Shown: positions 3,374-63,600 of the stretch, in pieces | How positions within the stretch are numbered: the first letter of the stretch is position 1 | Layout: each line of letters starts with the position of its first letter | NCBI GenBank assembly: GCA_037379345.1 | Contig: CM074517.1 | Coordinates: forward strand, 1,426,001 to 1,490,000 | Source of the DNA: Perna viridis | Lineage: Eukaryota | Reading direction: 5' to 3' | Length of the DNA: 64,000 nucleotides | Position numbers and translations under genes: made by a program | The notes under the pieces: model-generated | Databases searched by the model: none | What the model was told of the DNA's origin: nothing | The model's input: the letters and a program-made list of their open reading frames with translations, nothing else

Positions 3374-5859
3374 TTAAATATTCCCTGTTGACTTTACAAT
3401 ATGGATGTAGCAGAGTCGTCTGAATTCATCTATATCGGAATCACAGAGTTCAGTAGAACTTTTTCTACCGAGGAGAATTCGGACAAGCGATTCATCATCA
3501 TACTCGCTTAGTTCTACGTACAACTCTAGAGGAAAATGTTTAATTATAAGGTCCATCCAAACATGAAACAACTCTGAAGTACTTGTACAGTTTTGGGTAA
3601 CATGGACAAGCATATCGGTGAATATTTGATCACATAATTTACATGATTGTTCGATTAGGTTTGGTATAGAGGAAATATATTTAGCAATAATGTGAGCGGT
3701 ACGCAAATCAAAGCAGTTTGTAGGGTACTTCCAGATGTCAGCAACAGCAATGGAATTGTGGATTTCTCTGAATCGACTAAAGCAACTATGCGAGTCTATA
3801 CGTGTTTTCCAGTCATTATCATGTTTTGTATGAACGCATTTACCACCATGTGTTTCCATCGTAATTTACCAAGAAAGTCACCGTCTCTGATAAAGATCGC
3901 AAGGGATTCGTACAGGTTATATTTGATTAAGATATCTAAAATATCAGGGATAAAGCCTATGCGATTTCGATTGTCTGTTAGGCATGTAAAAAGTCTGTGT
4001 AGGAAGATGGTTTTCGCCAAGCAGCTATTATCCAACCTGCAAAGTTTGCCGAAGAAATAAAGTTTTTTTTATTTCTCTTGTTATGCTGCGTAACCCAACC
4101 ATACTTTAGCAAATGTCCGATCGTGTGAGTGTGCTGAACTTTTGTGCATGTTTGGTGTTTGTTTGTTTGTTGGGGTTTGACTTAGGCTTGCCACCACCTT
4201 TAAATAACGGAACCAAAAGACCCTTTGGCCAATCACTGGGTACTTCACATTTAGATATCATGGTATTTAGAAAAAAAACTGTGATGCATTCAACAATTAG
4301 TTTCGGTCCGCCAAAAATTAAATGTTCATTTTGAACCAAGTCATTTCCACTAGCTTTTCTACGTTTTAATTGTTTGATAACCGCCGCAACATCTTCGTCT
4401 GTTATGATACCACCGGGTAAGTATTGTTCTTTAACAACGTCACACACAGTTTCAATGTCGTCATACATTTTATTCACTTCACGGAATGTTGATTCGTCAA
4501 ACATAGAAGTATCGGACGGTGTATATAAGTCTTTGAAGTAACTAGCAAACGCATTACAAACCGATTCGGGGGTATTATGAACAGTGTTATTAAATTTTAT
4601 CTCATGGCACACCTTTGACTGTTTGGTTTCTGTCGCTTTATAAGTTTCCAAAACAACTTTATATCACATTCAGCTGCATTGTTTATATCATCGTATGTCT
4701 CTTCCATATATTGATCATGAGCAAGTTGCTGTATATTCCTAAAATTACGTTTTGCTCGTTTATAATTAATAAAGTAAGACGGATATTGCATACCCCTTGG
4801 TCTACCATCCTGCAACCATATTTTACGCATTTCACGTTCTTTACGATGCGCTGTTTTAACGTCTGCATTCTAATACGGCTTCGTATATGGATTGAATGTG
4901 TTACATGGTATTGATTCTTTTGCCGCATCAAGTATCGTAGTCACCAAATCCGAATAAAAGGAATCTATATCTTTGTCGTTGTGTTGAAGATCGTGTATAA
5001 GTCTATTTAACGGTTCACAAAGACTGTCTTGGTATTTACGCACATGCTGATCGGTGACATTGTGCCACGATGGCAACTTCGAACATTTGTTTGACTCAAT
5101 ATGAATATTTTCTTCTAGCACAACGGATGCAATAACGGGCAGATGATCCGATGTCGAACTTAACGTTCCTTCTTCGAGAATTTCGTATTGTCTTAATTGT
5201 CTGACTAGCGTCTCTTCAAGTAAAATGTAGTCTAACAAGGTGTTCTTTAAGGGAAATGTAAAGTCTGGACCTTTCCGCAAAGCTTTAAAGGAATCAGTAA
5301 ATGGGTGATATAGAAAATGTCTTTTTACGAAATTTTGTAGTTCTTTTGATTTTACTGTGTTTGTAAGATTCATGTGTTTACTGATGCAACTAGCGTTTAA
5401 GTCTCCTGCAACAATAATTTTACCATAATTAGTGTAAAACGAACACAGGTCATCAAGGGCATTTAGCTCTTGCCTATATTTATCAACTGAACTATATGCA
5501 GGTAAGTACACGCCAAAAATAAAAATTGATCTAGAATTTTTGCATATCACTTCAATACCTACAATTCTATCAGAGTTTGTATCTAAAATTTCTTCAACTG
5601 AGAATTGTAAAGTAGATTTATACATTAAAGAGATACCAACTTTTCCATGTGTATAGTAGTATGGTTTATGTAGCTTGTAAGTTTTTGATATACTACGATA
5701 TCTTTTATCGATACTTTCCATATACGAAAGAAAGTTTGGTTTAAGTTTATGCTCACACATAATTGCAATATCACAATTGGTATGATTAAGTAAATTTGCC
5801 AAGCACACAGTAGATGACATTATACCTCTCACATTCCATGTTAATATGTTAAGGCTCAT
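3374..5859 (-). pseudogene. LINE-B ORF2 (APE endonuclease, linker, RT start, C-terminal CCHC), frameshifted with internal deletion
   Basis: MSLNILTWNVRG, CEHKL, GVYLP, AGDLNA, LDYI and SDHLP motifs. KASGNDLVQNEHL..W.KGLLVPLFKGG then jumps directly to post-RT sequence. Confidence 0.85.
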
Positions 5860-5937
5860 TATAGCAAAAGCAATAAAACAAATATTAAAAATAAACATTA
5901 TGAACAACATGGGGACTAGTTTATTGTATATAACCGA

Positions 5938-29800: not shown

Positions 29801-30110
29801 TGATATTATGTTAGATTTTCTTTTTAAAAAGTTCTTCATCTTACAGTGTGATCTTTGCTCTATTTTATAAATCATTGTTCATATCTTTTGACAAAACATT
29901 AGTTTGTAGAGAAGCAAAAAGAAAATGCACTATATTTTAATAGCATCCATGTTTTGACTTACATCATCTCAGGGATATGCAATACAATACTGGTACCTAT
30001 TACTAATAAACATTTCAATATAATCATTAAAGTTGTTGTTTTTCTGCTAGAGTATTCATTTTCATACTGAAATTTCAGAATATCATTTCCCTGCTACAAA
30101 CATGAGTTTT
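26856..30110. repeat. Higher-order tandem array A-B-A-A-A-B' (A about 476-478 bp, B about 1.25 kb)
   Basis: GGTCTCAGTATCGTATTAA at 26856, 28578, 29054 and 29532. The sequence after the first A (CCTATTACTAATAAAC...) recurs after the last A. Confidence 0.92.
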
Positions 30111-32992
30111 GATTTATTAGTTTTGTTAAGAACGTCAGTAATTCATATCCGCCATACTTGAAATGTTCTGTCATTACTCCTAGACAAACTGGGGACTTGC
30201 GATTTTTCATTGAGGAGATTATATCTTGCACCTCAGATTCCAGAAATATTGGTGTGATATCTGTATTATTTTTACATATATCTTCCAGTAGTAGACGATC
30301 AAGTTCGACTCGGGTGTTGTATGAATCATCTGAGCAATCAGGACTATTTGCGTAGCTAAATCTTTGAAATATTCTGCCCACCCCTCACGAATCCCATCAT
30401 TAGTTGTAAGAGTTTGGTCATTCACAATGAGGTAGGTAGTTCCCCTATTTCCATCTTTTCTCTGTTCGCCTATGAGTTTGTAAAAGATAGTTTGATCTCC
30501 CTCATGAGCTGCCATAATATTTTCATATGTTGATCTCTTTTTACTTGCCTCGCGCTGACGTTGTAATTTACGGAGGTTCTTTTGGGCTTCTTTCATGAGT
30601 TTAAAGTGTTCATTAGATGGGTCAACTGGTCTACCATTCTCCTTCCATATCCAGAAGTATAACTTACTCTCTTGACATGCCTGTTTGATGACAGGTGACC
30701 AAGAGCGTTTTTGCTTTATGGCTTTTATATTTGGTTTTGATTTATTTGAAGCTATTGTTAGTATATATATCACACAACTGTAAGATGAGAGAGTTTACAG
30801 ACTCTTCATGATTAATCTACGTTCTAGGTTTTCAATGGAAGTAGAGACGAGTACTTAATATAGTTCAATGTCAACTTTTTCCCAGTTTATTTTATTACTT
30901 TGTATAATTACTTCATCATCCGGTTTAAATATTTCCAGGTTCACCCTTAGGTCACCATAAATAGGATCGTGTTAAGAGGCTCCCTCTCAAGTGTTTGTAG
31001 TTACTAATGATTCCAAGTTTACTTTGAATAAAATAGTCAATTTGAGTCTTACTACTGCCATTTGGATGGAAATAGGTAAAGCATTCTTTGACGCTGGCAG
31101 GTTTACATATTTGCTCATCTTGCATTCATTGAATCAGTAGTTTATCTCTTGTTGTGGGACAATCTCTATTCAGAGATGCATTCATATCTCCCGCAATTGC
31201 AATTATTATTTCACAAGTTGGCCTGTATTTATGTATAATTTCTCTTAACACATCAAGCGAGTCTGCATATTCTAGGTCAGCAGATGCCTTACCCCGACAT
31301 GGCAAATATATACTCCAATAAGAATTATTAGTGTAGGTGTAGCATTTATCTTGACAGTTGCTATGCTTGGAGAACCATCCGGTTTTTCCTCTGTACTTTT
31401 TCTTACGTTATCTCGGTAACAGATGGCAATCCCACCCATGCCCCGTGGACGTTGGAGTGGTGAGATCGGATCCATTTCATCCACACAACTGACAAGACAC
31501 CGAAATCCTGGTAAAAAAGACTGCAGCTCAGATTTTTCAAAGTCATATAACCAGTGTTCTTGAAGGATTAAAATATCAGTGTCACATGGAAGTTTTTCTA
31601 AATATGGGTTACCGGCCCAAAGCCTTCGATGTTATAGGATAAGATCGAGATGTCGTATTCCACGGGATCATTGGATAGATCGGAAATATGCTATGTTGGT
31701 TTAGTAATGATTGTTGTGGAGGCAGCATTAGCTGGTGGACATACGGTGTCCAGAGAGGTTTCATTTGAGGCTGATGACGGGATAAAAAAAATGCTATTGG
31801 TTTGGTACCAGGTACCAGTGTGATATTAGTATTTCCATATCTAGTGTCTATACACTTGGTCAGATGTTTGGATACTTTATAGTTCTTTTCATTTTCTGTA
31901 GGTTCATTACTCTTTTTAGTACCATTGATATCAGAGATATTTTGCTCCTTTCCTCTGTCTCTCCATTGGTACATCTGAGTTCCCATATGAAGTGTGACTC
32001 TGTTCAACACCATGATCAGAGTTAAGTTCAGTACCACTCTGTTCATGCGAGTCAGTTTCATTGGTTGTAGTTTCCAATTCCACGTTCTCAGGGGCTGTTT
32101 GTATTGGGTGTTGTGGGAACATGTTCATATTCACAGGTGATCCGTGTACATGAGGTAGAGGTGTAGAGGTTCAGTAAACATAAACGGCATTGAGAGTTTA
32201 GGAGTTTTGGCTGATCGACTACCGTTTTGTTGTCTCTTTGGTTTATGATTAGTAGCTTGATGTTTTGTTGGATTTTGGAACTTTAGAAATTGTTCTAAGG
32301 AGTCCATTCTACAGATATTCCTGATGTTTTCTAGCTCTAGCCGTCGAATCCTTTGATCTTGTAATAGGAGATGAACATTAGAAGTATCAGATCCACATGA
32401 AGCATTCTGAGTCTTAGGAGTATTTGAGTCAGCAGATCTATCTCCCTTTTCTAGAATGAGTATCTTACTTTTAAGTATTCTATTTGAATCTTCAAGTTCT
32501 TTACACATATTTTCTAGTTGCGCAACATATGCCTTGGAGGTAGCAAGTAATTTCTTAGAAAGCTCAAATTCAGATTCTACCTTTCATGGTTTTATATTGG
32601 TTTGTTTCAAATTCTTACGTAATGCCTCCATTTCAGTTTGATCATTGTTATGAATGACCTGGGTCTTGTCAGTTGTGCTTTTTCTACTTCCACGTTGTGT
32701 GGTACTACCTGCAAATATGCTGGTATTATTTGTTGTAATTTGAGATTTAGTGACTATATCAGTTGAGCCACACGTAACTTGTGACAATAATTTCGGAGAT
32801 GGGATGGTTACATTGACTATTTTTGGTGGTTCCTGGTTCGGGACAAGAGAGTTTATATTCACTTCATTTATTGGGTCTTTGTCAGCAATTGTCCCTATTT
32901 GTAGCCATCTTCTTTTTCTTAGCAATAATCATTTTCAGCTCGGGGAAGTTGAGCTCGGGCTCAGTATACCCAAAATACTGACTTCCATGTTC

Positions 32993-36673: not shown

Positions 36674-39600
36674 CTGAAACAAAAATCCTTACACATTCAA
36701 ATATTTTTTTAAACAATCTGAAACTCAATAAAGTTAGTTCTTGATTTATTAATGAAATAACAAGTAAATATCAATTGATCGTAAATTTTAGGATTAAAAT
36801 TAAATATAAAATAAATCCAATACTGTCATCTAAAAACTTGATTAAAATAATAACTAACTCCTCTATCTAACTAGTAATTAACAACAGAAAGACTTTCATC
36901 AAAAAGATAACATGACATAACCAACTTTAACTTCACATTCTTTCAATTCTATAAATTTATGACAGTATAAAGTCATTACTTACTTTACTATAATTAAGTT
37001 TAGTCAGATAATTCCATATGGTTTCTCCGACTTTAGTATGGATGGCTACCAGACAGAATACAGCTGATTTTCTAACAGTACTAACTGGATCATCATAGGC
37101 CTATCAAATGTACACAAAAATCAATCTAATGATCAAATAACATTTTTTAGAAGTTTAATTTCCCCATTCACATTACTAAATAAAACAAACAAATGTACTA
37201 CCATTGCCATCATCGCTCCTAACCCCAGACAACAGACCACTGCAATGATCCGTTCCTAACCCCAAACAACAGACCATTGCCATAATCAGTTCTAACCCCT
37301 GACAACAGGCCAATACAATCATCGGACCTAACCCCACATAACAAACCATTGCCATCACCTTTTCTAACCTCTTACAACAGACCATTGCCATCATCAGTTG
37401 TAACCTCTGACAACAAACCATAGCCATCATCGTTTCTAACCATTAACAACAGACCATTGCAATCATCGGTCCTAACCCCAGATAACAGACCATTGCAATA
37501 ATCTGTTCCTAACCCCAGACAACAAACCATTGTAATCATCGGTTCTAACCCCAGACAACAGACCACTGTAATCATCGGTTCTAACCTCTGACAACAGACC
37601 ACTGTAATCATCGGTTCTAACCCCAGATAACAGACCACTGTAATCATCGGTTCTAACCCCAGACAACAGACCACTGTAATCATCGGTTCTAACCTCTGAC
37701 AACAGACCACTGTAATCATCGGTTCTAACCCCAGATAACAGACCACTGTAATCATCGGTTCTAACCCCAGACAACAGACCAATGAAATCATCGGTTCTAA
37801 CCTCTTACAACAGACCACTGTAATCATCGGTTCTAACCCCAGACAACAGACCACTGTAATCATCGGTTCTAACCTCTGACAACAGACCACTGTAATCATC
37901 GGTTCTAACCCCAGACAACAGACCACTGTAATCATCGGTTCTAATCCCAGACAACAAACCACTGTAATCATCCGTTCTAACACCCAGACAACAGACCACT
38001 GTAATCATCGGTTCTAACCTCTGACAACAGACCACTGTAATCATCGGTTCTAACCCCAGACAACAGACCACTGTAATCATCGGTTCTAACCCAAGACAAC
38101 AGACCATTGTAATCATCCGTTCTAACACCCAGACAACAGACCATTGCCATTATTGGTCCTAACCCCAGACAACAGACCATGGTTTATATGGTCTTCTATT
38201 GTATGATTCTAATGCCATCTTTTTCTACAGTTTTCTTTTAAAGAATTTCAAACAATATCAAAATGCAATTTTTAAAAAAAGATTAAAACTGAGATAAAAT
38301 TACCTTGACCAGACCAGGAATGATATCAGTTAATTTCTTCTCTAGGGCATCATTCGGCATTCTTTCTACAGCTTTAGTCTGCATTTTAATGGCTCCTAGA
38401 TTGATAGGATGTGATGCTGACTGAACTATAGGACTGAGTATTCTAATACATTGTTCTGGAGGAATATAATTAGCTAATGTCTCTGCACACTCATCAGCTG
38501 CCTTCTGTACCTGAATATTCAAAACACACTCATAAATTCTTTAATAAATTTATTTAAAAATTCCTAATTTGGCGTCACAGAATGACTGTTTCCCTTTCTT
38601 CATAGGAGTAACTTCAAAAATCAGATCAACAATTATCTGTGTCGGATGGACATAATACATTTATAAACTATTTTTTAAGTGATTTAATTTTTCTCTGTAA
38701 TGTATGTAATTGTTCATAAGACAATATCTACAATACACCTGATGATACATGTAGTAATACCATCAGGTCAGAAAAAGTTTCAAATTTGCATTTCCAGGCC
38801 AAAATGTCATTTTAGTGATAGCTATTTACAGACTCTTACATAGTCAAATTATAAAAACAATGATGTCAGTATTAATAATTATATTGTATAACTATATCTG
38901 GTTTCAATAATAGAACCTAAAATTAACAGTAATAAATCTAATGATATCTACCCTCCAGTCTGGGTCTTTATGGGCCTCTAAAATCCTTAGAGTTGTCAAC
39001 TCGGCATAATCACAGAATCTACGAGGCTGGTGACGTAAAATTTCACGTAAACATTTCAATGCTAATGCTCTTATTTGGATCTGAAAGTAAAAAATCAAAC
39101 TTTTAAAGAATATACTGTAAACAACAGCTAGCAAACCAATAAACTGTAATCACCGAGATAAGTCTCGCCTGTCAAACATGGACGCTGTTATTCAAAACTT
39201 GATTGATGATGAGTTAATTGTTTGCATATATGGAATTGTGACCAAGTAATAATCTGGAAGTCAATGGACTGCGGAGGCATGTGCACAAAATACAGTTTTG
39301 TAGTAGAGTGACGCTAATGCAACTGCTGACCAAATATAATTGACCTAGCATAAGTGGTTCATATCAAACTGACATAATCAGAAAACATAACATGAAAATC
39401 TTAACCAGAACACCAGAAACACAACACCTTAGTCTTGCTTTTTGCAGGATTCATTGCAGGCAAGACAAAAACTTATCTCTTTACAATAAACTTCCTACTT
39501 GTTTTAATTATGGGTGCCACTACCATACAAGTGTATTCTAGTTTAGAATAGAACACCATAAGAAACTTCTTACATTTACTCTAGACACAGTCATAAGTAC

Positions 39601-42600: not shown

Positions 42601-45600
42601 ATTTGAAATTTTAGAAATCATGGGGATAGTATCCTGTATAATAAACTTCTGTTTACATTTTATTGATGGTAAAAAAGATAGTGTCTTCAAGCTTTTATCA
42701 AAAGAATGACAAGCACTGAAGCATGGTGATGTTATGAAGTTAGTCCCTAAACCAATAATAAATTCCACAAGCAGCCATGAATATATAAATGATCTTATAC
42801 TATATGACTGAATGGTTGAATCAAGCAACACGGTCACTCATCTATATATGTCAAATATATAATATAAATGATGTCTACTGTAAAATTATATAAAAAATAG
42901 TATTTAAAGAAGTAGCTGCTTCTTATAAAATCTGCAGAAATATACTAAATAAGAAAAAAGTCACAAAGTTATCCTGCAATACATGATTTATTTATAAAAA
43001 CCCCTCATAATCCCAGTTATTTCTAACACTAGAATGGGTACAATGATTTCCTGGCCATTAAGTTATGACGTCAAATTGGTCCTTTACTCAATATTGATGA
43101 ATTTCAACAGGATATTTTATAGCAAGTAATATAATTAACTTCAGGGAATAGAGGCAGTCTTCCTTGGATTAAATGACAATCCCCTGATGTCATTAACTAT
43201 GTAGTTAACTAAACAAGGATATTTAAAGTTCTTATTAAACTTAGATTAAATATCTGATATAAAAGAAAGTTTAAATCTCCTTGTTGATTGTCCAGTTTAC
43301 TACCAAAGGCATTTCATCAGATCCTGATGTTAACTATACTACACGCTGTAAATTTTTGTCACCTTATCTTAATCTCTGATTTACTGTTCTGTATTTTAAC
43401 TATAGGTTGATGCATTTGTTGTGTTTTAACATATCCATACTTTTTTCCTGTAAATTTTGATTGAACAAGATTGCAGGATAACAATATGCAAACAGGAACA
43501 TTAATTTCTGAATCCTGACTCTACAATAGAGACAAAAATCCAGGTTCCCAAATGAACTGGTCTATAAACAGTAAAATCTGTTTCCCAAATAGCATGGTAC
43601 ATCTAGATTACAGCAGGATATGGCTGGATATAATTTGGTACACAAACCTTTAGGAAGACAGAAAGACTCTATTTCTATAACAAAAACATTATAACTAAAA
43701 CAAAAAGGCCAACTTATTGTATTCACAAAATATATAAGGTATTCCTTTTACTAAGTTATAACCTATTTAAGTTTAAATACGATCTAAAATAATAAATTCA
43801 CTTTATCACATGAAGAAACCACCTAATGAAGAGATACCTCATGCCAAATGACAGATAAGTCTATATTGACAGTGTGAGAAAACTTCTTCTACCCCAACCA
43901 GACCAGGTACCTATAGATCATACATACCTTCATTGAAAGACTCCCCTTCATCAAAATCAGGATCAGCCAATCGTGATCGGTTCAAACCATTTAATGTATT
44001 CTGATAAAAAGAAAAGGAATCATATCATTTATTTAAAGAAAAAGAAAAAAAAATCAGTATTCATAAGGATTTTAAATGGGTCACCCAGCACTACCTTGTC
44101 TAACTTTCTTATGGAGAGATTTAATTGATAATGTATAACATCAGGATGAATGTCTCTTTATTTACCTGATAATATGACACTTTCAACAGTGTATATTATT
44201 CTAAGACAATAACTGCCATTCTCAACTACTTCTATATTTCAAGTTGGGTGAATATAAAGGAACTGTTAAAAAGACCATAAACCTTTAAAACAGTTGTAAT
44301 GTTGAGACCTTGGTGTCATAAATGTAATAAGTCTATTGTCTTTCTATTTTAACTCGTAATTACACTTGTTTTTCAGTGTATGATTTGCATGTTTTTTTTT
44401 ATTTCCTGCTCTTTTTTTATGTATGTTTACAGCAAAGGTATAAATTCAACTTCAATTCAGGCGTTCAATACTTTCATGAGTGGAAAGTCCTTGACATTTC
44501 CAAGTTTCAAATCTATGGTCTACTTGAGGAAAATCAAAGTTGACAATTAAGTGTAATTTAAACGGCTGAGGGTCCAGGACTAAGATAAAAAAAATTGTGG
44601 GTCCTGGACTTGGGACCAACACAAATCTGAACCACTGCCTTTATCCTATATCACAACAGCAGAAACCGGTAACATATTTATATTTTTATGTTTAGGTCTC
44701 ACTAACCACTTCTAACGTTTCCATTACTTTACATGTTAAAAAAGTAATTTTCAAAGTCTCACTGTGAATTCCCAGGACAAATGACATCTTAAAGCTGCAT
44801 ACCATTGCGAAGCTTGGAAAATAAGGCTTCCAAAATCATTATGCTAATGGTACAATAATAGTAGAAATTCTTCACAAAATTTACTTGAATAAATAATACT
44901 GAAAATCCACATTTTTACCTGTTCTGCTAACTGACAGCATGGAGGCAAATTACTCACACATGTAAACAATATTCATACACTTTTGTAGTTAATTACATAT
45001 ATGATTTTTAAGTACACATTCTCAGCTTTATTTTGACTACTTTTAATCATAATACACACAAATAATGCACTTACAATGCATATGTCTAGGTTCAGTGTGT
45101 TTTTGGTACTACATAGGGGGGTGGCCATTTGACCCGGAAGTGGTTAGTGAGACCTTATGCATCATTTCTCTCAAATTCATTAATTCAATTCCCTTTGTAG
45201 TAAGGGGAGGTAACTCACCTCATCTTGGTAATGTGAAGGATTATAATGTGGTTTCCTGCCATCGACAGCATCAGGACTATCATTCCGTAAATCCTGAATA
45301 CCACTGTCCTGAGAAGTAAAGTCCATTTTTTTCTTAACACCATCATAACTGTCAAGTTTACTATTTATAGAAAGATTCTGAATGTCAGCTGAAGTCTTTT
45401 TAATAGAATTATAAATATCCTCAGGATTCATATTCTCTGTTTCCAACTCGTCTGGATGTTCATTCCTGGAATTTAAGATTTATTAGCTATTGGTAGCAGG
45501 TAATCTTGTAACAACATTTTATGTTTATGTTTCAAACACTTTGTTCTGTTATTAATACAATGTACTCAGAGGGATCAAGCAAAGGATCTGAGTACATTGT

Positions 45601-48600
45601 TATAGTACTAGAATAATGATAATATTTAAGTGTTTAAACATCTGACTTTGTTAACTTCACTAGGTTTTACATTCTCACAGTCAAAGAATACACAAAATTT
45701 GCAGGATGTTAAACAAATTTCTAAATACTATTGTGAACTTTTTCTTTTACCTACATTCTTGAACACTGATAGGGTTCTATATTTTCCTTAAAAAATTGAC
45801 TACAAATCCAATAAAAGGTGTTGACAGAAGCATGTTTAAATGGTGGTTGTGTAGACAGACGGACAGACAGATATAGTACTATATCTCATAGCAATTTTTT
45901 TACAAGGAAGTAATAAAACTGTACCGTGATGGGGGTCTACTTCTGTTTTGAGGAGGACTGGTAACGTTTCTAGGAGACAGTACATCACTTTCGTGACTAG
46001 CACTACGAATGTGATTATGTAATATTTTCGTTGCACCATCCTGTAAAGATAAAATAATAAGATAAATAAAGCAGTAAATCTGGGTTGACTCTCACAGGAA
46101 TAAAACTGAAAATTTTGTACATTTTCTACCTTCAAATGTGTCATCACATTCCATAAAGTATTCTATACTGAAATATATGTACCTGTAATAAGAGCTTAAA
46201 CTTTAATTCTAACCACATATCATTAATAAAAATAATTACATAAACACTGGGTTCTAGTACTAAGTAGTTTTCACCTTAACCATTCCATTACAGTTTAGAG
46301 TAAGAACATGGTTAAATCTTAGTAACTCAACTTTTGACAAGTTTCCTTAAGATTAAAAAAATATGAAAGTAGAACTTAAGTTTTAATGTTTCAGAAATTG
46401 GTGTTCTAGAAATCCAAATAGATTATACATAAGAAAAGGTTGGTATGTTGATTTTTTTTTTTAGACAATCCAGATGTTCAAGCCATCCACATTTGTGCAA
46501 GGGTGAAATTTAAAAACCTAAATATGCTTATAAATGGAAACCACAAAACTAAACAGACATGTACTACTTACTTGGAATGCTTTAGGTAAGTATGACAACA
46601 TCATGGAAAACTCCGGAGGATTCAGATTAAATAATGCTATTAATACCACTTGAGCACCCTGGAAATATCAAACTAATAAATTAACATTCAGCATGATGAC
46701 AAGAAATGGTCAAACATTGTAATCACTTGAACCAGTGCTATATTCTAGGTTAAAGAATCTTCCTGTACTAGATTAAATGACTTAAGATACTGGCAGTTTA
46801 TTACACATATTTTGCTTTAAGAATTTCTTTACTGATACTGATTTAATGATAACATACCTTTCTAACTTCAACACTCTTTGGTTCTGTGGTCCAGTTAATT
46901 ATTCGTGAGATAGCTAATCGAGAATCTGCGGAATTCATTAAATCTGACACATCCATCACTTGGACCAAACTATGTAAAAAGTTCAATAGGCTTGACTTCA
47001 CCTGAAATAAATTAAATGTTTCTTTTTTTTTTTTAAAGTTTATCACAGCTTTCCTCATCAACTGTTGTTACTTTGTTCTACTGAAAATAGTGAGAAAAAT
47101 ATTGAATTCCATAACCATGCATCCCTGCCTGCTATAAATAAATCAACTATACACAACAGAACAGGTTGACCTAAAGATTTAGCATTATCTATTGTGACTA
47201 CTTTATTTTATTCTTTCAAGTCAATCTTATAAAATTATGTAAAAAATGTTATCATGAATAACTTCTGTATTCATATAAAGCGACACCCACCCTTTTACTG
47301 ACCAATAATCTGACCTAAACATGGGGGAAGGTATTACACTCTGAGAAACACACAAAGCAAAGGAAAAGTATCTGGTTGTTAACAGCTTTAATTAAGAGTA
47401 ATACACCTCAAATTATTCTAAACTTTACAATAGGATTCTAAATGAAGAGGAATACACCTCAAATTAATTAAAACTTTACAATAGGATTCTAAAATTATTA
47501 AAGTCTAAGACAACTTCATGTTTTTAACATTATAGATTTTGTACATTTAATTCAGGAAAAGCTCTATTTATAATTAACTGAGAAATTTACTTATTACCAA
47601 ACATGGGAAGCAACAGAGGTAAAATTCTGATTAGTCCCATGTGAATCTCCACAATAGGCAAAGCAGCAGGCACCCACACCAAGTGACCAAGGAACTTTTC
47701 TTCATAATGTGTAAGTATATGTGAAGATATATTTTGATCAAATGAAACTTTCACTCATTTCAAAAGAATATACAAATATAAAAAGGTGCAGTTGTTGGAA
47801 AAAGATTTTATGAATGAGAATAAAAATCTTTATAGAATTTAAACTATATACATTTTTACTGGAATGAATGGTTACAATTAAGCATGCAAATCCCCAGAAT
47901 TTTGTCAGCAGAAATCAACACCAAATTTCTACATACAACACACAGACCAAAAAATTGTAACCATTAGCTTTCTGTAAGTCATAATCAGGAACAAATCTGA
48001 AGAAATTGGCCATGTTAGAATTAAAATGTATATACAAGTGAAAAGTGAATTCCTGTGAACTAATTTCAGATTTGCACAACAGTTATTATTACAACGTAAA
48101 ATGAAGAAAAGTTGGTAGAAGGTGAAGAAAGTATGATTTACCTTCGGCTGCAAGAAAGCATGAAAGAAAAACAGATATATTTCAAGTTTTTCTTTTCATA
48201 CATAACATGATACAATATCATAGATACACTGAAGTGAAATAATGAAAACTAGACACTGAACAGACTGAATCAAATCATTAAAATCCTATGTACTGTACTT
48301 CTAACGTTAATAATTGTAAATATAGTGACATTAACAATCCTTTCTTTACTAAGGCACATAATTATATTTACTAACATCACAATGGACAGCAAATAAAGTA
48401 ATGTCATCTGCATTGAGGTATAAATCAAGCAATTTTCTGTGTATTACCCAGTCGTAGCTCTAAAGCTAAGTGCATCGGAGGCATGGGGATAGGGGTCTCA
48501 AGAGGGCTTTCAAGAAGGCTTTCAAGAGGGCTCTCAAGTGTTCTGCACTTTGTTTCTAAAAGAATTCTGTTTTGATTATTTTTAGAATTAGTAATTCATT

Positions 48601-54600: not shown

Positions 54601-57600
54601 GCATCAGCCAAAGCATCCTCTACGTCTGAACCATGCCTTAGAACTCTGTGATGAGTTACTGTAAATATAGAATAGACATGGTGAATATGTCAGAGACAAG
54701 AACCCCTGCTGAATGAAAAATACCAGTTCAAGGCCACCCATGGGTCTTCAAAGTCTTCAAAGATTTATACAGAGAAACAAAATAATAAGGAACCTTCTTC
54801 GTGCTTTCTTTTTTTTTTTTAATTTACTTTGGAAAAATGTATAATACTCCAGGTCTTAAGTAACAAATAAATGTTGTACTGCAAACTCTAATAGAGCATA
54901 AAATATTCCTAATGGTAATCCTTACACATTTGACCTATGACTTATGAATCTCTAGGAATTCCTTTGCAAGGAAAAAAAATCCTGCACATATGTCATCACA
55001 AAGGAATTCAAAAACCTACTACATTAGACTGGTCACCTAGTTTCTATGGATATCCGCCAGAAAATACTTTTTATGAAAAAGATGTTTTGGTATGAAGTAC
55101 AGCCACCATTGAAATCAGGATAAACCTTCATGAGTTTTTTCATCCTTATAGTATTGTTAGATCACTGCTTATTTACCTTTAGTTTTTCCACCAGATGATG
55201 GTATTTTACTTCCACTTAATCGTCTCTCCCGACCTGATTGACCATATCTGTTAGGACTACCTTCCCTACTAGCACCTTGGCTTCTAACAACCCCTGATCG
55301 GCGTGGTTTGGCTGGTGTCTTTGAAATATAGCCGAGTCGGGATGTAGGTGAGTTAGATCTACTGTTGGCTGCAAACAGAAAATATTATTATAAAACAAAA
55401 CTCTTCTCAAATTTGAATTATTTTCAATAAATGACTTTTTCTTTACTGACATTCTATAAGATTTCCAATACAAAATCCTACATTTCTTAAAACAGCTGAA
55501 GTGAGTTTTATGGGTTTTTCACATTTCTATAAAAATGCTTTGTTTTCTTTATTTTTACATGCATGTACATTAATTTTTCCACAACAAAACCATCAATGTC
55601 CAATCTTACCTCCTATTGGCCTATATCATTCGGAAAGCCCAGGAAAGCTATTTATACAACACAATATATAACAATGGACATTAACAACAACATGTGAAAG
55701 CTACCACACAAAGCTGTGCAACATAATAGGGTAACACACAAACTAAAGAACAGTTGGAAAGATAGAGAGAAGTCGATCAAGTCTAAGCAGTATAAGGTCT
55801 GGCTAACCTGCTCTCAGCCTCATCTACATCAGTTTAAATCTAGTCGTAATACTCCATGCAGTGCCAAAATTTCCTCAACATTTGATGTGAATTATACAAG
55901 TACATGTACACTATAACATTTATAGTTCACAATAAAAACATTACAATATATTGAATCTGTGATCAATTGAACACATATAATGAGATGGACCATCACCACT
56001 GATACATAGATGCCATATTTTAAGGACCAGTAGCCTTCTACTTACGCTGGGATTGTGAAGATCCTGAGGTTCTCCCTCGTCGACTTGATGACACTGCCTG
56101 ACTGCTACTCCTCTGTCTTGCTGTAAATGGAGCAATTTGTAATGTACACCCTTCAATCAACTTACTTTTTGAAACACACATAAAACAAAAGAAAGACCAA
56201 AGCCCAACATAAAAGCAACAAAGAAAATCTAAAATTAAACAAAAGGTTTAACAATGACATCGATACTGTCTACAGATGTTCATTACCAAATCTCGTTGTC
56301 CCAATTTTGACATCCTGAACTCAGAAAATTACTCAAGAAGTTGGATTTTTAAGGGAATTTTCAAACTTGATACTGTATAAAATCAAATTTGGGATATTTT
56401 AATTCACAAAAATAACAAGGTTCGTGCAGAGAGAAAATAATCTCCCCATAGATTGCTTTATGTGAAAGTTAGCGGGGAAACTTATACATGAGCTCATACA
56501 TGTACATTCATATTAAGCATAAAATATCTGTAATATGTTTCTACAAGTGCATTATATAGAGATTACAAGTTACTGGGTTGCAGTTATACTGTACAGTCCC
56601 TAGGTACCAGATAATCTAGCCATCTAAACCCATCTTAATAGTGTAAACTATAAATATGTGTATGCTACATACTTATAAATATTAAAAAAAATCAAAAAAA
56701 AACAACAACAACAACACATAAGTACAAAAATTACCATCCTGAATTTCTTTGTCATAGATTGACACCTCCTGATAATGATTTTCTCCAGAATCATTATAAA
56801 TTTCACACTCTATGTCTGACCGTGCTGGAATTTCAACTACATACGGAAAAAGAGCAAAATGAACTTTCTTTGGTCTATTCCAGAGTTCATTGACTCCTTG
56901 TGCCGGCATAATCATTTTCCACAAAATTACATCCAGTTATAAAACATGCATGTAATCAAGTAAGCATATCTCAAGTCAAGTTACATCAATGCCAGAATTA
57001 AACCATATCACACTCACTTGTTAATCGCAAAAACTATATTAATTCCATGTAAAACAATCCAGTTTAGATGTTTGACCATACATGTTTCAAATTCTCATTC
57101 ATCTGCTCCAAAACTTGTCATGCATATTTATCTACCAATCAAAATATTTAACATTTCACCATAACACATTTTTGTACCATTAAACAATAAAAAACAGCAT
57201 CGATTCTCTCAGCCATTTCAGTCTTTTACTGAAAAATTCTGGGTTTAAATTGTTCAGAATTGATTTTCCTTAATTATCCAATAAATGCCAGCAAAACACC
57301 AAGAAACAATAAAATTGTTTATACATCAAAATCCAGAAAAACAATCAAATCCAAGAGGATGGTTAAAGTATAGTGACCAGAAATCCAATATAAATACCAA
57401 ACTTTCCCATATTTGTCCATTTTAAGCATAAATCACTCATTATTAAAATTCCATGTTGATCAAACAACAATTTCAGAAGTTTAATAGATTAAATCAATTG
57501 GTGTTTTGATCCAATTGTGAGGTTAAACAGATGTCCTGATCAACAATTACTCCTACGGCTAATTACACAAACACTTTGTCAACTGATTATCACGATTATG

Positions 57601-60600
57601 TGATTACAGGATTAACCTTTTATCTGATGGTCAATGGAAAGGTCAAGGAAACGTTCAAATAAAAACAACACAAATTATAACTTATTGACACTTTTGGCAA
57701 TCCCTTCGACTGGGTAAATATCTTGCTCTACAAATACAGGTGGCTATAATTATGAATAGCAAGTTGACTAAAACACCCCTGAAGGACTACCCTCTTTTTA
57801 ACTTATACTGTCTTTAAAGGAATAACTGTCGGTGTAAAAATATCCCAACTGACATGTTAACTATCCATGTTGTGTAACCATGCTGACAAAAGTCATCACT
57901 TTATTACATAAATCTGTTTGAAGTTTGACATTTCATAACATGATTAAACTGACCATACAAACTTTCCTTTAAGTGGAATTTCCTTTCTGACAGAATCTTA
58001 CATTGAAAATTTTATCCTAAACACTAAAGAGGTAGTAGCCATTTCATTTTACAAACTTTAATAGATTAATACATTGATCCCCATACAAAATAATCTCCAT
58101 ATGATATACCACCATCATATTCTATGTCACCTTCAATAGAAGGCTGAGAAATTTTACATCCAAATACAGCAACCTATTTAATTGGCAAACTCCTACTTCA
58201 CATAAAATATTTAACTACTTTCTGAAGCCATTCAAATAGCTAACATTGCAACAATGTTGCAATTTAAACCTCATGATAAAAGTCTTAAGCTGTGAGTCAC
58301 TGGTTAATCCCTTCAGAGTACAATAGATGTCAATACTGTACCAACATATACTAATGGTCAGTAGGTAGATAACTGGACAATACAAAAACTAAGGACCAAA
58401 TCACTATGTGATATCACCAGAGTTCTTAGGTTTAACCTGAACTAATATGAATCAGCACAGGTAAACTGTTACATTACTTTTGACTTATTACCTTGTTAAT
58501 ATAAAATCAACTTCTCGTTAACTGCCCATCATTTGTACCTGTAAATAGCCCCTTAATGGCAGGTGAATTATTTTGAGTCAAAAAACCTCCTACAATGTGT
58601 GCAATTTTTCTCTTTTGTAAGGTAATTTTTCACATGACCTCACTGTGCTATGAGAAAATTATTTTCCCAATTATATATTTTCAAACAACTTACAATTCTC
58701 CCTGATCAATAAGGACAAAACATTTACCCTTAGAATTTTAACAATTTTTGAATAACTCATTATAAATATAGAAAATAAGAGAACCTTTCTCATAAGATTT
58801 CATCAAAATGTACTGAAAACTGAAGGAACATCTACCAGTATATAGGTCATAACTTTACAAAAAAGTTAGAAATTGACAACTATACACTGCCATAAGTGAC
58901 ATTTGAGAACAACATCTTGAAAGATCTCCATTGAATTCTGGACTTCTGTCCAACAGTAACCCACATTAGAAATGATATTACTTCAGACTATGGGAAAGTT
59001 AATAAAGTATTGAAGGGCAATGTCTTGCATGTCGTCAGCCATATACATATATATTAAATCATAAATCAGGATTTATTCACTAATATCTCAAAGAAAACTG
59101 TTACATATCAATTACTCTGCCAAGATCAGAGATTTGTATGAAAGAGACGACCATTATATTACTCCTGATCCTTAAATAGATAAACCATATTGATTTACTA
59201 TAATCTTCTATTTAGGTAATACAGACTTATTAGTGACTACCATAAACACTGGGTCATCAACTAGAAAAACATAGAACTTTGATAAATGAACTGGTTTCAA
59301 GACAACGGAAGCAAATAAACCCTAAAAACTGGAAAATTCTATCTTTTTATTTTGTAATTTACAGAGCAGGTACATTTTCCCACAGGTTATCAAAGTCATT
59401 TCTTAAGGGTCATAATTACAATTTGGAAAATATTACTTAGACTGGCTGTAACCACACCAATTGCAGAAATAAAGGAAAAACTTTATGACAAAATTGTTCC
59501 ACATTGATACATTTCAATCTGCATTTTTTCAATGAAAATCAACTCTGAACTTTAAAAAGCTCTATGTCACAATCAAAATACATTAACTTAGTTACATCAC
59601 TCAGGATTAGACAACCATCAAATCCATCCAAAAATTAACAAAACATCTTAGATTTAATAATGTAAACCATTCTAACATTGGGTACAAACCATGCCATGAC
59701 CATTCCCTGATCACATGCATCCATATCCTTTCATCACCTTAAGCCATGCAATTGAACAATTATCAACCATTAATTCAGCAAGAAGTGTACCCTAAAGATA
59801 GGCAAATCTAGAAACAAAAATAAGTAAAGGCCCATGCTTAACCTCATACCATTTAATCCTATATAAAAAAAATCTGTGGTAAAAACAAAAATGTTGATTT
59901 TATTAGTGACCAAACTTTCATTTTTCATGCCTCAGGCACCATTCTCAAAACAAGTTAAAATTCCTTACGCAGTGAGTTATACGTTGAGTTATAAGATGAC
60001 ATATGATTTGGAGTTGTTCTCCCTGTAACTGATGATGTTGGGGTCATACGTCCTGAGATTGAAGACGTTGGGGTCATTCGGCCAGAGATTTGAGATGTTG
60101 GTGTCATGCGACCAGACATTGACACCGGAGTTGTCCTTCCTGATGTTGTATTTGTACGTCGATTACGGGGTGTTGTAGCATATGGATTGTTTAAATCTGC
60201 TGCACTGTTGGAGCGCCCAATTCTACGCCCATATAAATCGTAAAGAGGTTTGTCAAGGTCTGAAAGTTATCACCAGACATAAAACAAACATATTAACAGA
60301 AATAAATGTTATAAAAGGAAGAAAAAGAAAATTAAATTGTACATGTATAAAATTAATAAATTTTAATAGAGTCATAAGGTAAAAGGATACAGAAAAGCAG
60401 CTCTCAGCAATGATTGAACAGAAAAAAAACATATCATTATTACCTGTCTACTTCAGTTCAAACATTTGCAAAATTTTAGATGCAGCAAAACATTATCACA
60501 TTTTTAAGATGCCAAGACTTTCAACCAATTCTGCATGCATTAATTTGACAAATTTCCTTCATTTAAAAAAAAAAAAAAAAAACAATGATGTGTTTTTTAT

Positions 60601-63600
60601 CTGCCAATCAATGCTTAGCTTCATGCTAAGAAAGGGTAAAAGTTGAAGAGAAAGGAATACATTAGTATGTGAAAGGCTATAGGCCAAACCACAGCAATAG
60701 CTGGTATGGATGTAAAAGCACTCAACTGATAGCATGTCACATGGGAGTCATGTGATCACCTTACCTTTAGGAGTGTCATCCAAATCTGGACGTGAAAGTG
60801 AAAGAAGAAAGTCAACAGAGTACATGCAAACACAAGCACAAAGGATAAATAAAATGCAGACAATTCAGTGGAAGGGGTTTTTGTCAAAAAATGGGAAATC
60901 TAGACCTATGATGTAAATATAATTTGGGTTAGGGACATAACAATTATCTTTCCAACTCAAATTCTTTCATGCAAATAGTCAAGTATAAGATTAACAGTAG
61001 TACTTTACTTATCACTATGGAAATATATTGATCAATACAAAAATGTGTTCAACTGATCAAGTCTCTCACGAAGGAGATTTTATACAAAGGTGCTTGTCAG
61101 TAAATTTGTTTTCTGTTCTTCAAATCATTTAAAGGTTGATATACTTCTATTATGTATACACATATTGACCCTCCTGAAAGGTAGAATAATCCTGAACCAG
61201 GTAGTATACACCTATTGACCCTCCTGCAAGGTAGAATTATCCTGAACCAGGTAGTTCCTTTTCCCACAGATAAGATATGATGCACACATTCATACTACCA
61301 GGTGCCTATTGCACTGTTAATTAATTCATATGAAACAATTGAAATGATCAACCTTATTAATAATATTTCTAGAGCTCAAAGCTTTGAAGCATACTAGTTA
61401 GGTACCAATTCACTATTGTTAGTTCTCAAAACTTCTGATTCTATTCTACCATTATCTGTATAAATCATAGACTTATGTGGTATACTTCCATAAACAGACA
61501 CCATGTAATTGGACTTATTCAGAAATTCAATTTCAATCCCCATCTTCTTCAAGATTTGCATCATCTAAAGGTATATGTGTAACTGGAAATCAAATTACTT
61601 TACTTCCATTACAATACTATATAAAATATAAATGAGATCTTAACAACGATGAAATAAAAATCAACATTTTTATACAAATATCTTCATCGCCATTTGAAAT
61701 GAGATAATTTTAAAGCATTGGTCAATCAAAGACTACACTAAGATAAATGGTGTCTGTTTTCAGAAACTTTAAATTTTCATGCTAGTATGGACTATAATTT
61801 GATCACTGCCACATGCAAATTTGTCTTTGATACCACCATTTTTTAAAAATAAATAAACCTGTTTACCATTTGTTAAAATCAGTACTTTAAAAATTCATTA
61901 ATTTGAAGACTTACAGCATTGTACAGTTATAATATTATAGAACTCACCACATTAAAATTTAAGCCAATTTTCATCTTGGATTAAAAACCAAATATTGATT
62001 TTAAAAAAAAATGAATATACACATTAAGCATTAAATGTAATTGTGTTTTACCTGCTCCACCTGTATCACTGCTGGCAGAACTAAACTTTGAATGTTTCTT
62101 CTTTCCTATTCTCCTGTAATCAATAAACAGAACATATCCTGGTTATCTCCCTTCACTTCTCATTCAACAAGTCTCGAACATTGAATTCAGAAATATTTTC
62201 TTAAGAAAAAAGACATCTCCTCTAAATAAAATATCATTTCTTGAGGGAAAATAAATAGCCATAGTACTTCAATTTCTGTTGGTTTTTCTAAAACATTAAA
62301 AACAAATTACCATAGAATTCTGTGAAGGAATGCAATTAATTGCCATTACAGTGCATTTTGTTATATTTCTATTTCAGACCATGTTAAAAAAAAATTTGGA
62401 AGATGAACTCTGAAATAAATCAAATAACAGGTTTAGATACATTACAAAATTTTGACGACTTTTTACTAATAGGGCAATAGCCTGCTTACCCTAGGGTACT
62501 TGAGTCAAATCCTCTGTCAGTACTGTGTGATCGAGGTCGTGAGGTCAACCCTTCGGCACTATTTAATGAGTTATTGCTTGAGGATCCACTGAGTTCACCT
62601 CTAATTTGTTTTTGTTTGGCTGGCTCCAAGGAATTTAACAAAGCATCAGCCTGATCTTTAAAATGGTCAGCAAATCCCCAAAAGGCTCTGAAAATAACGA
62701 AGCAGAATTTATATATTTAATCACATATTTAAACCCTATATTTCCTGATTCATATAATTAAAGGTACCAAAACTTGGAAGAAAAAGTCAAAGCTATCACC
62801 ATCATTACATATTTCATTAACTTACTTTTTAGAAAATGCCCTAGCTTAAAGTGAGATCATTCATTAGTAACTTAATTTCTAGAGAATGCCCTCACCTCAG
62901 CGAGAGAGATGATACATTACAAACCTACTTTCTAGAGAATGCCCTCACCTCAGCGAGAGAGATGATACATTTCAAACTTACTTTCTAGAGAATGCCCTAG
63001 CTTCACTATCAGCATCATTAATTCCTTTCTTTAAGGCATCTTGAAGATTGGCAATCTGTTTTTCTAATACATGTGTTGACCATGTGTGTAAAATTTGGTT
63101 TAAAAATTCACAGGAAGTCCTGAAATAAAGACATCTTCAACTACTTTTTTTAATTAAAGTACATTCTAATTCAAATGAAGTCTAAGTTAAAAAATTTTAA
63201 AAACCCATGATGACGAATGCGACTGTGCCATTATTTATACATGCACAATTTTTTTGTGGTCGCATAAAAACCCAAGGCATTTCCAATAACATACACACTA
63301 AGACCTCTGAGCAATAATACAGATTTAATTTGCAATTTCATCACCTTTGAAAGTTTTTTATTTTTTTTTTCTAACAGCTTATGACATTACCTAGAGCTTT
63401 GTGTGAAACCTGCAATCTGTTCCTTTTACACATACAAATTTCTTTGTATGAGTAAAGCACTGAAAGCACAGTCCATGTGTTTCAAGAAATTAAAATTTTC
63501 AAAAATTCTTATCTCATGTGGATAGCAAAAAATAAAGACAGAGAATAGATACAGCATTACTTACCGTCTAATGGTACTGGATTTAGATGTCATCCCTGAT

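Follow-up and report, generated by a model that had tools for sequence, protein, structure and literature searches.

The window analyzed here is a stretch of 64,000 nucleotides (nt) of Perna viridis DNA (NCBI GenBank assembly GCA_037379345.1, contig CM074517.1, positions 1,426,001 to 1,490,000), the minus strand of which carries a gene for the microtubule plus-end protein CLASP. Inside one intron of this gene lies an open reading frame (ORF) at window positions 56735-56915. A preliminary description, made before any database search, had put this ORF forward as an internal first exon, giving a CLASP that lacks the domains TOG1 and TOG2 and begins with a docking site for the phosphatase PP1. When all of the evidence is taken together, the explanation that we favor, with moderate confidence, is that 56735-56915 is a conserved alternative first coding exon of CLASP with an RVxF-PhiPhi PP1-docking N-terminus.

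The domains and exons of CLASP were placed by matches to PDB structures, by sequence and by RNA reads (Table 1). The RNA evidence comes from one stranded run, X21, the sole listed run recorded as RNA, of which about 19% was read as raw reads, with a threshold of 3 reads for the listing of a splice joint. Reads joining 59969 to 56120 bound the intron that holds the ORF (59968-56121; 3,848 nt), and this intron has GT..AG ends. The exon that follows it begins ...acag/CA AGA CAG, where the slash, here and below, marks the splice site, and its acceptor is in phase 1. Exons 59969-60259, 56046-56120 and 55177-55368 all run from phase 1 to phase 1. The ORF is on the CLASP strand, 3' of the last TOG2 exon and 5' of the exons for the S/R-rich and SxIP-bearing part, for TOG3 and for the C-terminal domain.

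The first ATG of the ORF (56915-56913) stands in the context gtggaaaATGa, with an A at -3 (wider start context gtggaaaATGATTATGCC), and the peptide translated from the minus strand contains RPKKVHFALFPYVVEIPAR. In the minus-strand sequence of 57100-56600, no AG occurs between the upstream in-frame TAA (56937-56939) and the ATG, so the frame could not be entered from an upstream exon and only a translation-start exon is possible. At the other end, the donor leaves one base (G), which together with the CA of the next exon makes a GCA (Ala) junction codon. The stretch is not a dispersed repeat; in its own genome it is found only here and in a 99% identical duplicate of the whole locus, and the motif likewise occurs nowhere else in that genome. 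A Pfam search with the ORF and nine of its relatives gave nothing meaningful, a PDB sequence search with a profile of the motif gave no match at E <= 10, an Rfam search of 55000-60400 gave no match, and the ESM Atlas, queried with one relative of the long type described below, gave no usable match.

The structural claims of the preliminary description stood up well to this analysis. The minus-strand sequence bore out a 60-codon ORF with a good start context, an upstream in-frame stop and no acceptor; the RNA reads bounded an intron of the 3.8 kb that had been given for it, and the exon stretch proved not to be a dispersed repeat, the intron having been described as free of recognizable transposons. 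The donor does fit the phase of the next exon, and the placement after TOG2 and before SxIP, TOG3 and the CLIP-binding domain agrees with the PDB domain matches and the exon sequence. The RVxF-PhiPhi match was also found as described, in KKVHF and a V26-V27 pair five residues on.

Table 1. Positions of the candidate start exon, its parts and the surrounding CLASP exons in the window
Feature	Coordinates	Strand	Evidence or remark
Candidate alternative translation-start exon of CLASP	56735-56915	minus	ATG + 60 codons + 1 base, phase-1 end
Start codon ATG	56913-56915	minus	MIMP (ATG-ATT/ATA-ATG-CC) kept in four window-type loci
In-frame TAA, 8 codons 5' of ATG	56937-56939	minus	Sequence
Conserved core, codons 14-36 (RPKKVHFALFPYVVEIPARSDIE)	56808-56876	minus	Coding constraint and profile matches
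KKVHF, strict RVxF-type match	56856-56870	minus	Pattern match
V26-V27, candidate PhiPhi hydrophobic pair, then E-I-P	56835-56840	minus	5 residues past the RVxF Phe
GT of phase-1 donor (GATG/gtaatt)	56733-56734	minus	Phase-1 G/GTAA(A/T/G) in 8/8 loci with DNA
Open segment with exon, end of TOG2	62489-62716	minus	CLASP1 TOG2, PDB 4K92 residues 229-270, E 0.0066
Canonical exon, 291 nt, GRMTPTS repeats, cassette	59969-60259	minus	RNA reads; upstream of candidate exon
Next CLASP exon, 75 nt, A-RQRSSS...SQSQR, phase-1 acceptor	56046-56120	minus	RNA joints 59969-56120, 56046-55368
S/R-rich CLASP exon, 192 nt, SxIP motif (SKIP)	55177-55368	minus	20 junction reads and sequence
Open segment with exon, TOG3	46846-47061	minus	CLASP2 TOG3, PDB 3WOZ, E 5e-12
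Open segment with exon, C-terminal (CLIP/LL5beta-binding) domain	38286-38522	minus	CLASP2, PDB 8WHH, E 9e-19

Conservation of the ORF and its position in CLASP

The length of the ORF by itself is not unusual, since ATG-initiated ORFs of at least 77 codons are common in the window, with 21 on the minus strand and 18 on the plus strand. The strict form of the RVxF motif is rare in the six-frame translation of the window (11 occurrences per 119,793 residues); five of these are followed by a hydrophobic pair, and the combination is present in only one of the 181 open segments of at least 60 amino acids. Judged from sequence comparison, the decisive excess over chance is the conservation across species.

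A word search with the ORF of 56735-56915 recovered three foreign ORFs (P0002, P0003 and P0004), which share the start M(IM)P and an invariant RPKKVHFALFPYV(V/L)EIP(A/S)R and then continue into divergent acidic tails of unequal length. A profile built on residues 1-45 and run against 1.84 billion representatives (50% identity) gave 12 true matches, none of them named and none with a Pfam domain; no vertebrate protein was among the profile matches at E <= 0.001. The relatives have two architectures: a short type, like that of the window, with 5-60 residues before the motif, and a long type with about 250-410. Within the long type, a conserved MG(K/R)G(E/K/Q)K opens the sequence of one subgroup, and in a second subgroup NSW(K/R)T is conserved near the N-terminus. 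A second word search, started from a long-type member, added 11 further clusters, and the word and profile searches together yielded about 25 unnamed ORFs from other assemblies. Common to them is the core [RK]x(V)HFA(I/L/T/V)FPY(V/I)xE(I/V)P, followed by acidic residues. Several long-type members (P0007, P0011, P0013, P0016 and P0021-P0028) also carry extra conserved blocks, LDINNPNLFSD(F/L)EDSDD(D/E), SESAI... and VSDSAI..., that are absent in the lineage of the window; these may be additional docking motifs that were lost or gained with the extension.

The core bears the marks of selection on protein. Over its 23 codons, the window and locus L003 differ synonymously in 14 codons and non-synonymously in 2, and 14 of the 18 base changes fall at third positions, the rest including AGA/CGA and CTT/TTA. 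By the Nei-Gojobori method, a 19-codon block compared across eight loci gave a synonymous difference (pS) of 0.4-0.85, which is saturated, and a non-synonymous difference (pN) of 0-0.09 within each type. This substitution pattern reads as the signature of a translated sequence and not of a regulatory DNA element. ORFs of such lengths are common in the AT-rich window and the exon is unexpressed in X21, as would be the case if the frame were open by chance or belonged to a conserved non-coding element (an enhancer or splicing regulator) that is open by accident. Neither, however, accounts for changes that fall in this way at third and synonymous first positions, for pS near saturation beside a pN of about 0.02-0.09, or for an ATG and frame that are kept in about 25 lineages, and we consider this explanation extremely improbable and, for practical purposes, refuted by the constraint data. 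Contamination from a single genome is an implausible source of the foreign ORFs because of the same saturated synonymous divergence.

The DNA alignments pick out the exon in the same way as they pick out its neighbors. Alignment of the window with the 5.7-kb locus L016 is limited to three stretches, with 75% identity over 108 nt for the exon, 73.5% for the RQRS exon and 76% for the SxIP exon. Within the intron, alignment to L003/L016 and L004 is confined to the 5' 108-121 nt of the exon, at 75-79%, like the neighboring true CLASP exons, and the similarity to L003 and L004 starts 10-13 nt 5' of the ATG. In L007, the closest relative, collinearity extends through the intron, with the motif as the best-conserved stretch, at 88%.

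The end of the similarity is equally well defined. In all eight loci with DNA, the phase-1 donor stands exactly where the protein similarity stops, and past the donor the frames run into unconserved hydrophobic text with stops at varying distances. At one locus (L004:1470-1640), a stretch of about 60 bp with the donor (..GAAAATAGGG/GTAAATGG..) is present three times in tandem, giving three candidate donors. In five of five loci with enough flank, the first recognizable feature downstream on that strand is the orthologous exon A-RQ(R/K)S...SQSQR of CLASP, whose acceptor has the form yag/C(A/G) and is in phase 1. It lies 0.6 kb from the motif exon in the window, 1.0 kb in L016, 1.25 kb in L014, 1.85 kb in L018 and 9.8 kb in L015; in the last of these the RQKS...SQSQR exon was located by a pattern scan, tblastn of the window exon peptides on L013/L015 having missed the CLASP exons. 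The SxIP exon follows in L016 and L018, and the amino acid identity of 55177-55368 is 81% to the former and 44% to the latter. Since intron, strand and phase are the same despite saturated synonymous sites, the exon has stayed attached to CLASP.

These observations also bear on the suggestion that the ORF is a small gene in its own right, lying within the CLASP intron but not spliced to CLASP, that encodes a stand-alone protein of 60-90 amino acids (300-450 in the long type). Such a gene would be in keeping with database members that are all self-contained ORFs with their own stop, with the absence of a spliced product from the searched size ranges and with the lack of junction reads in X21. 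It would leave unexplained why the sequence after the donor is unconserved and hydrophobic, why the stop positions vary, why a phase-1 G/GTAA ends the similarity in eight of eight loci, and why the ORF sits on the CLASP strand directly 5' of the same phase-1 CLASP exon in five of five; the self-contained database ORFs, for their part, are typical of a prokaryote-style gene finder run on unspliced DNA. We regard a nested gene as distinctly unlikely. Coding constraint, the conserved start, the donor phase, the position in CLASP and the invariance of the motif instead indicate that 56735-56915 is very probably a real conserved start exon of CLASP.

The motif, its possible partners and expression

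RVxF motifs follow the rule [K/R]-x(0,1)-[V/I/L]-{P}-[F/W], with the PhiPhi pair 5-8 residues further toward the C-terminus, and often one more hydrophobic contact ("Phe") and a contact through Arg come after it (PMC10731240). In the window the motif is K16-K-V-H-F20, followed by five residues, V26-V27, E28, I29 and R32. We also applied a stricter pattern, [HKR][ACHKMNQRSTV]V[CHKNQRST][FW]. The RVxF pattern was found in 32 of 32 members, made up of 21 from the first set and 11 further ones, the latter all KSVHF. The forms seen are KKVHF, RRVHF, RHVHF, KRVRF and KSVHF; V and F are unchanging in all 32, and position 2 (K/R/H/S) and position 4 (H/R) vary only as the strict consensus permits. After the Phe, every member has five residues (A, I/L/T/V, F, P, Y) and then a pair (V/I)(V/I/L/M). 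The RVxF-type motif is the most conserved part of the exon, invariant in about 25 lineages; conservation of KKVHF in related genomes had been among the checks named in the preliminary description.

In its layout the motif resembles those of RVxF-PhiPhi PP1 interactors such as spinophilin/neurabin, PNUTS and GM, with two basic residues before V-x-F, a pair five residues on, I29 two further, R32, and an acidic low-complexity context. The Pro at +4 after the Phe is presumably shared with spinophilin as well (KIHF-STAP-IQVF vs KVHF-ALFP-YVVE). It differs from these interactors in that Pfam and PDB searches gave no sequence homology, and in that the candidate motif is at the extreme N-terminus of a microtubule plus-end protein.

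Several observations weigh against a PP1-docking isoform of CLASP. In X21 the depth over the 5' half of the exon (56810-56990) is 0.15, compared with 0.3-5 over the intron and 5-24 over exons; the depth over 56629-56809 is 1.9. No joint from 56735 to 56120, which the preliminary description had suggested looking for, was listed at the 3-read threshold among the nine reads that enter acceptor 56120, all of which come from upstream canonical exons (4 from 59969 and 5 from the exon before the cassette). Among products of 42-135 and 246-782 amino acids, and among the 50%-identity representatives, none was found to run on into CLASP; full-length isoforms of about 800-1100 amino acids, or isoforms that cluster with canonical CLASP, would have escaped these searches. 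The related database ORFs, roughly 25 in number, all stop just past the donor and so look like calls on unspliced DNA, and the transcription start (promoter) of the exon is presumed. Finally, the invariant stretch (A21, F23, P24, Y25, E28, I29 and P30) exceeds what PP1 docking strictly needs, and FPY(V/I)xE with the acidic residues also resembles a B56-type LxxIxE site.

The exon is unused or nearly so in X21, and probably only a particular tissue or stage makes use of it. Runs X22-X24, which were guessed to be RNA, have no reads even on canonical CLASP exons and so no bearing on use of the exon. Automated annotations of some genomes may contain the isoform already.

The length of the invariant stretch and its resemblance to a B56 site would be explained if the exon were real and linked to CLASP and its core docked a partner other than, or besides, PP1: either PP2A-B56, through FPY(V/I)xE and the acidic tail, or a partner that reads the whole of HFAxFPYVxEIP. 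The invariance spans 13-15 residues, beyond RVxF and PhiPhi together, acidic residues follow the core in all members, and a loose [LMFI]xx[ILV]xE matches every one of them. A stricter ELM-style B56 pattern, ([LMFYWIC]..I.E) or (L..[IVLWC].E), separates the members: FPYIIE and FPYIVE (two lineages) fit it, and only the FPYI(I/V)E lineages P0010, P0016 and P0022 pass, but FPYVVE of the window fails. Neither Pro at position 2 nor Tyr at position 3 is known to be typical of B56 sites, and a B56 site or another partner would not predict an RVxF V and F that are invariant and permitted positions that vary exactly by the RVxF rule. We think that such a partner is rather unlikely. Docking of the PP1 catalytic subunit is, on the pattern of residues, the most likely function of the motif, an assignment that we make with modest confidence.

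Other RNA observations concern the exons and intron around the ORF. Twenty reads join 56046 to 55368 in X21. Five reads at 56123 share a loose end with 6 reads at 60262, which marks a skip of 59969-60259; this cassette exon is skipped in about half of the reads (5 that skip it vs 4 that include it), and skipping keeps the frame. In the same intron as the ORF, the stretch 57353-57714 (minus strand) has an RNA depth of 4-5, as high as that of nearby exons, on the strand of the gene and with no listed splice joint. It is single-copy and has no Rfam match, and its part 57382-57505 shows 79% conservation in L007 in each of the three frames, which makes it look non-coding. It could be a 5' untranslated region or promoter-proximal piece of the predicted alternative transcript, or intronic RNA.

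The predicted isoform in relation to known proteins

When GSK3/CDK phosphorylate the S/R-rich region around the SxIP motifs, CLASP is released from EB and microtubules, and its plus-end binding is switched off. To our knowledge, the local reversal of this phosphorylation is poorly defined.

If 56735-56915 is a start exon as proposed, translation of a transcript that begins 5' of it would start at the conserved ATG, and the transcript would be spliced from the phase-1 donor (G/GTAAT) to the phase-1 acceptor at 56120, with Ala as the junction codon and ATTCAGGATG/CAAGACAGAG as the spanning sequence. This splice, and with it a TOG1/2-less CLASP, is strongly suggested by the sequence and we consider it likely. 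TOG1 and TOG2 would be missing from the product, which would still contain the S/R-rich region, the SxIP motif, TOG3 and the partner-binding domain at the C-terminus. The new N-terminus, KKVHF-ALFPY-VV-E-I, would dock the PP1 catalytic subunit about 40 residues before the S/R-rich part that bears SxIP and binds EB, and the docked PP1 might hold that part dephosphorylated or be carried wherever CLASP goes. The parts of this scheme that we infer are the promoter, the splice to 56120, the binding of PP1 and the effect on phosphorylation. Of the isoform as the preliminary description had drawn it, the start exon of CLASP, its position, its phase and its motif have stood, and no spliced read was listed in X21 and no spliced protein was found in the searched ranges.

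Akhmanova and co-workers reportedly described, in 2001, the N-terminal isoforms of vertebrate CLASP2 (alpha, beta and gamma) as products of alternative first exons. The predicted isoform is like these in that internal start exons vary the N-terminus, and in that short forms lose one or more TOG domains and keep the S/R-SxIP region, the later TOG and the C-terminal domain. It differs from CLASP2gamma, which keeps TOG2; here the start exon comes after TOG2, and both TOG1 and TOG2 are lost. We know of no RVxF-type motif in the N-termini of vertebrate CLASP2. Full-text literature searches found nothing that links CLASP to an RVxF site or to PP1, and no CLASP isoform that starts after TOG2, in line with the preliminary description, which knew of no account of such an isoform.

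There are parallels among other microtubule-end-associated proteins, as Astrin (PMC6930079), KNL1, Kif18A and CENP-E deliver PP1 via an RVxF motif. In those proteins the motif is constitutive, whereas here it would be added to CLASP only by the choice of start exon. It is possible, though we offer this tentatively, that an invertebrate clade keeps a TOG1/2-less CLASP isoform with a PP1 dock, in effect a self-dephosphorylating, phosphatase-carrying plus-end tracker that is restricted to certain tissues or stages. If this is true, a phosphatase dock about 40 residues ahead of the S/R region would be a simple answer to how CLASP is dephosphorylated locally, and the isoform would give PP1 a new route to the ends of microtubules, the cell cortex or kinetochores. 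The case also illustrates that an exon missed by the expression data of one sample can be provable from comparative signatures, namely coding constraint, a conserved start, donor phase and synteny.

Other features of the window

The contig has two copies of the CLASP locus, one at window positions 38000-64000 and the other at G000:C7:1147175-1163250, on the same strand and 325.5 kb apart. The copies are 99-100% identical (3.45 kb at 99.4%), and the duplicate arose either by segmental duplication, very recently, or in the assembly, as a retained haplotig or other false duplication. The duplicate has one difference in the exon (56752, Asp55 -> Gly) and the rest of the intron is 0.5% different, so that this comparison has no power as a test of constraint.

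Repetitive sequences occur within and beyond the gene. An element of about 467 bp at about 44690-45157, in a CLASP intron, has matches of 97-99% in long tandem arrays on contig C8 (about 46.96-47.06 Mb), the period of which is about 1,047 bp, and in smaller arrays on C1, C2, C3, C4, C5, C6, C10 and C13; it looks like a satellite-like repeat. Just 3' of the last CLASP exon, 37179-38180 (minus strand) is a tandem repeat with long open frames in two phases (MITVVCCLGLEP... and SGVRTDDYSGLL...), and is probably a minisatellite and not a gene. Outside the CLASP part of the window, 3377-5910 and 30094-32508 (minus strand) contain long ORFs with endonuclease/reverse-transcriptase-like text, probably remnants of non-LTR retrotransposons.

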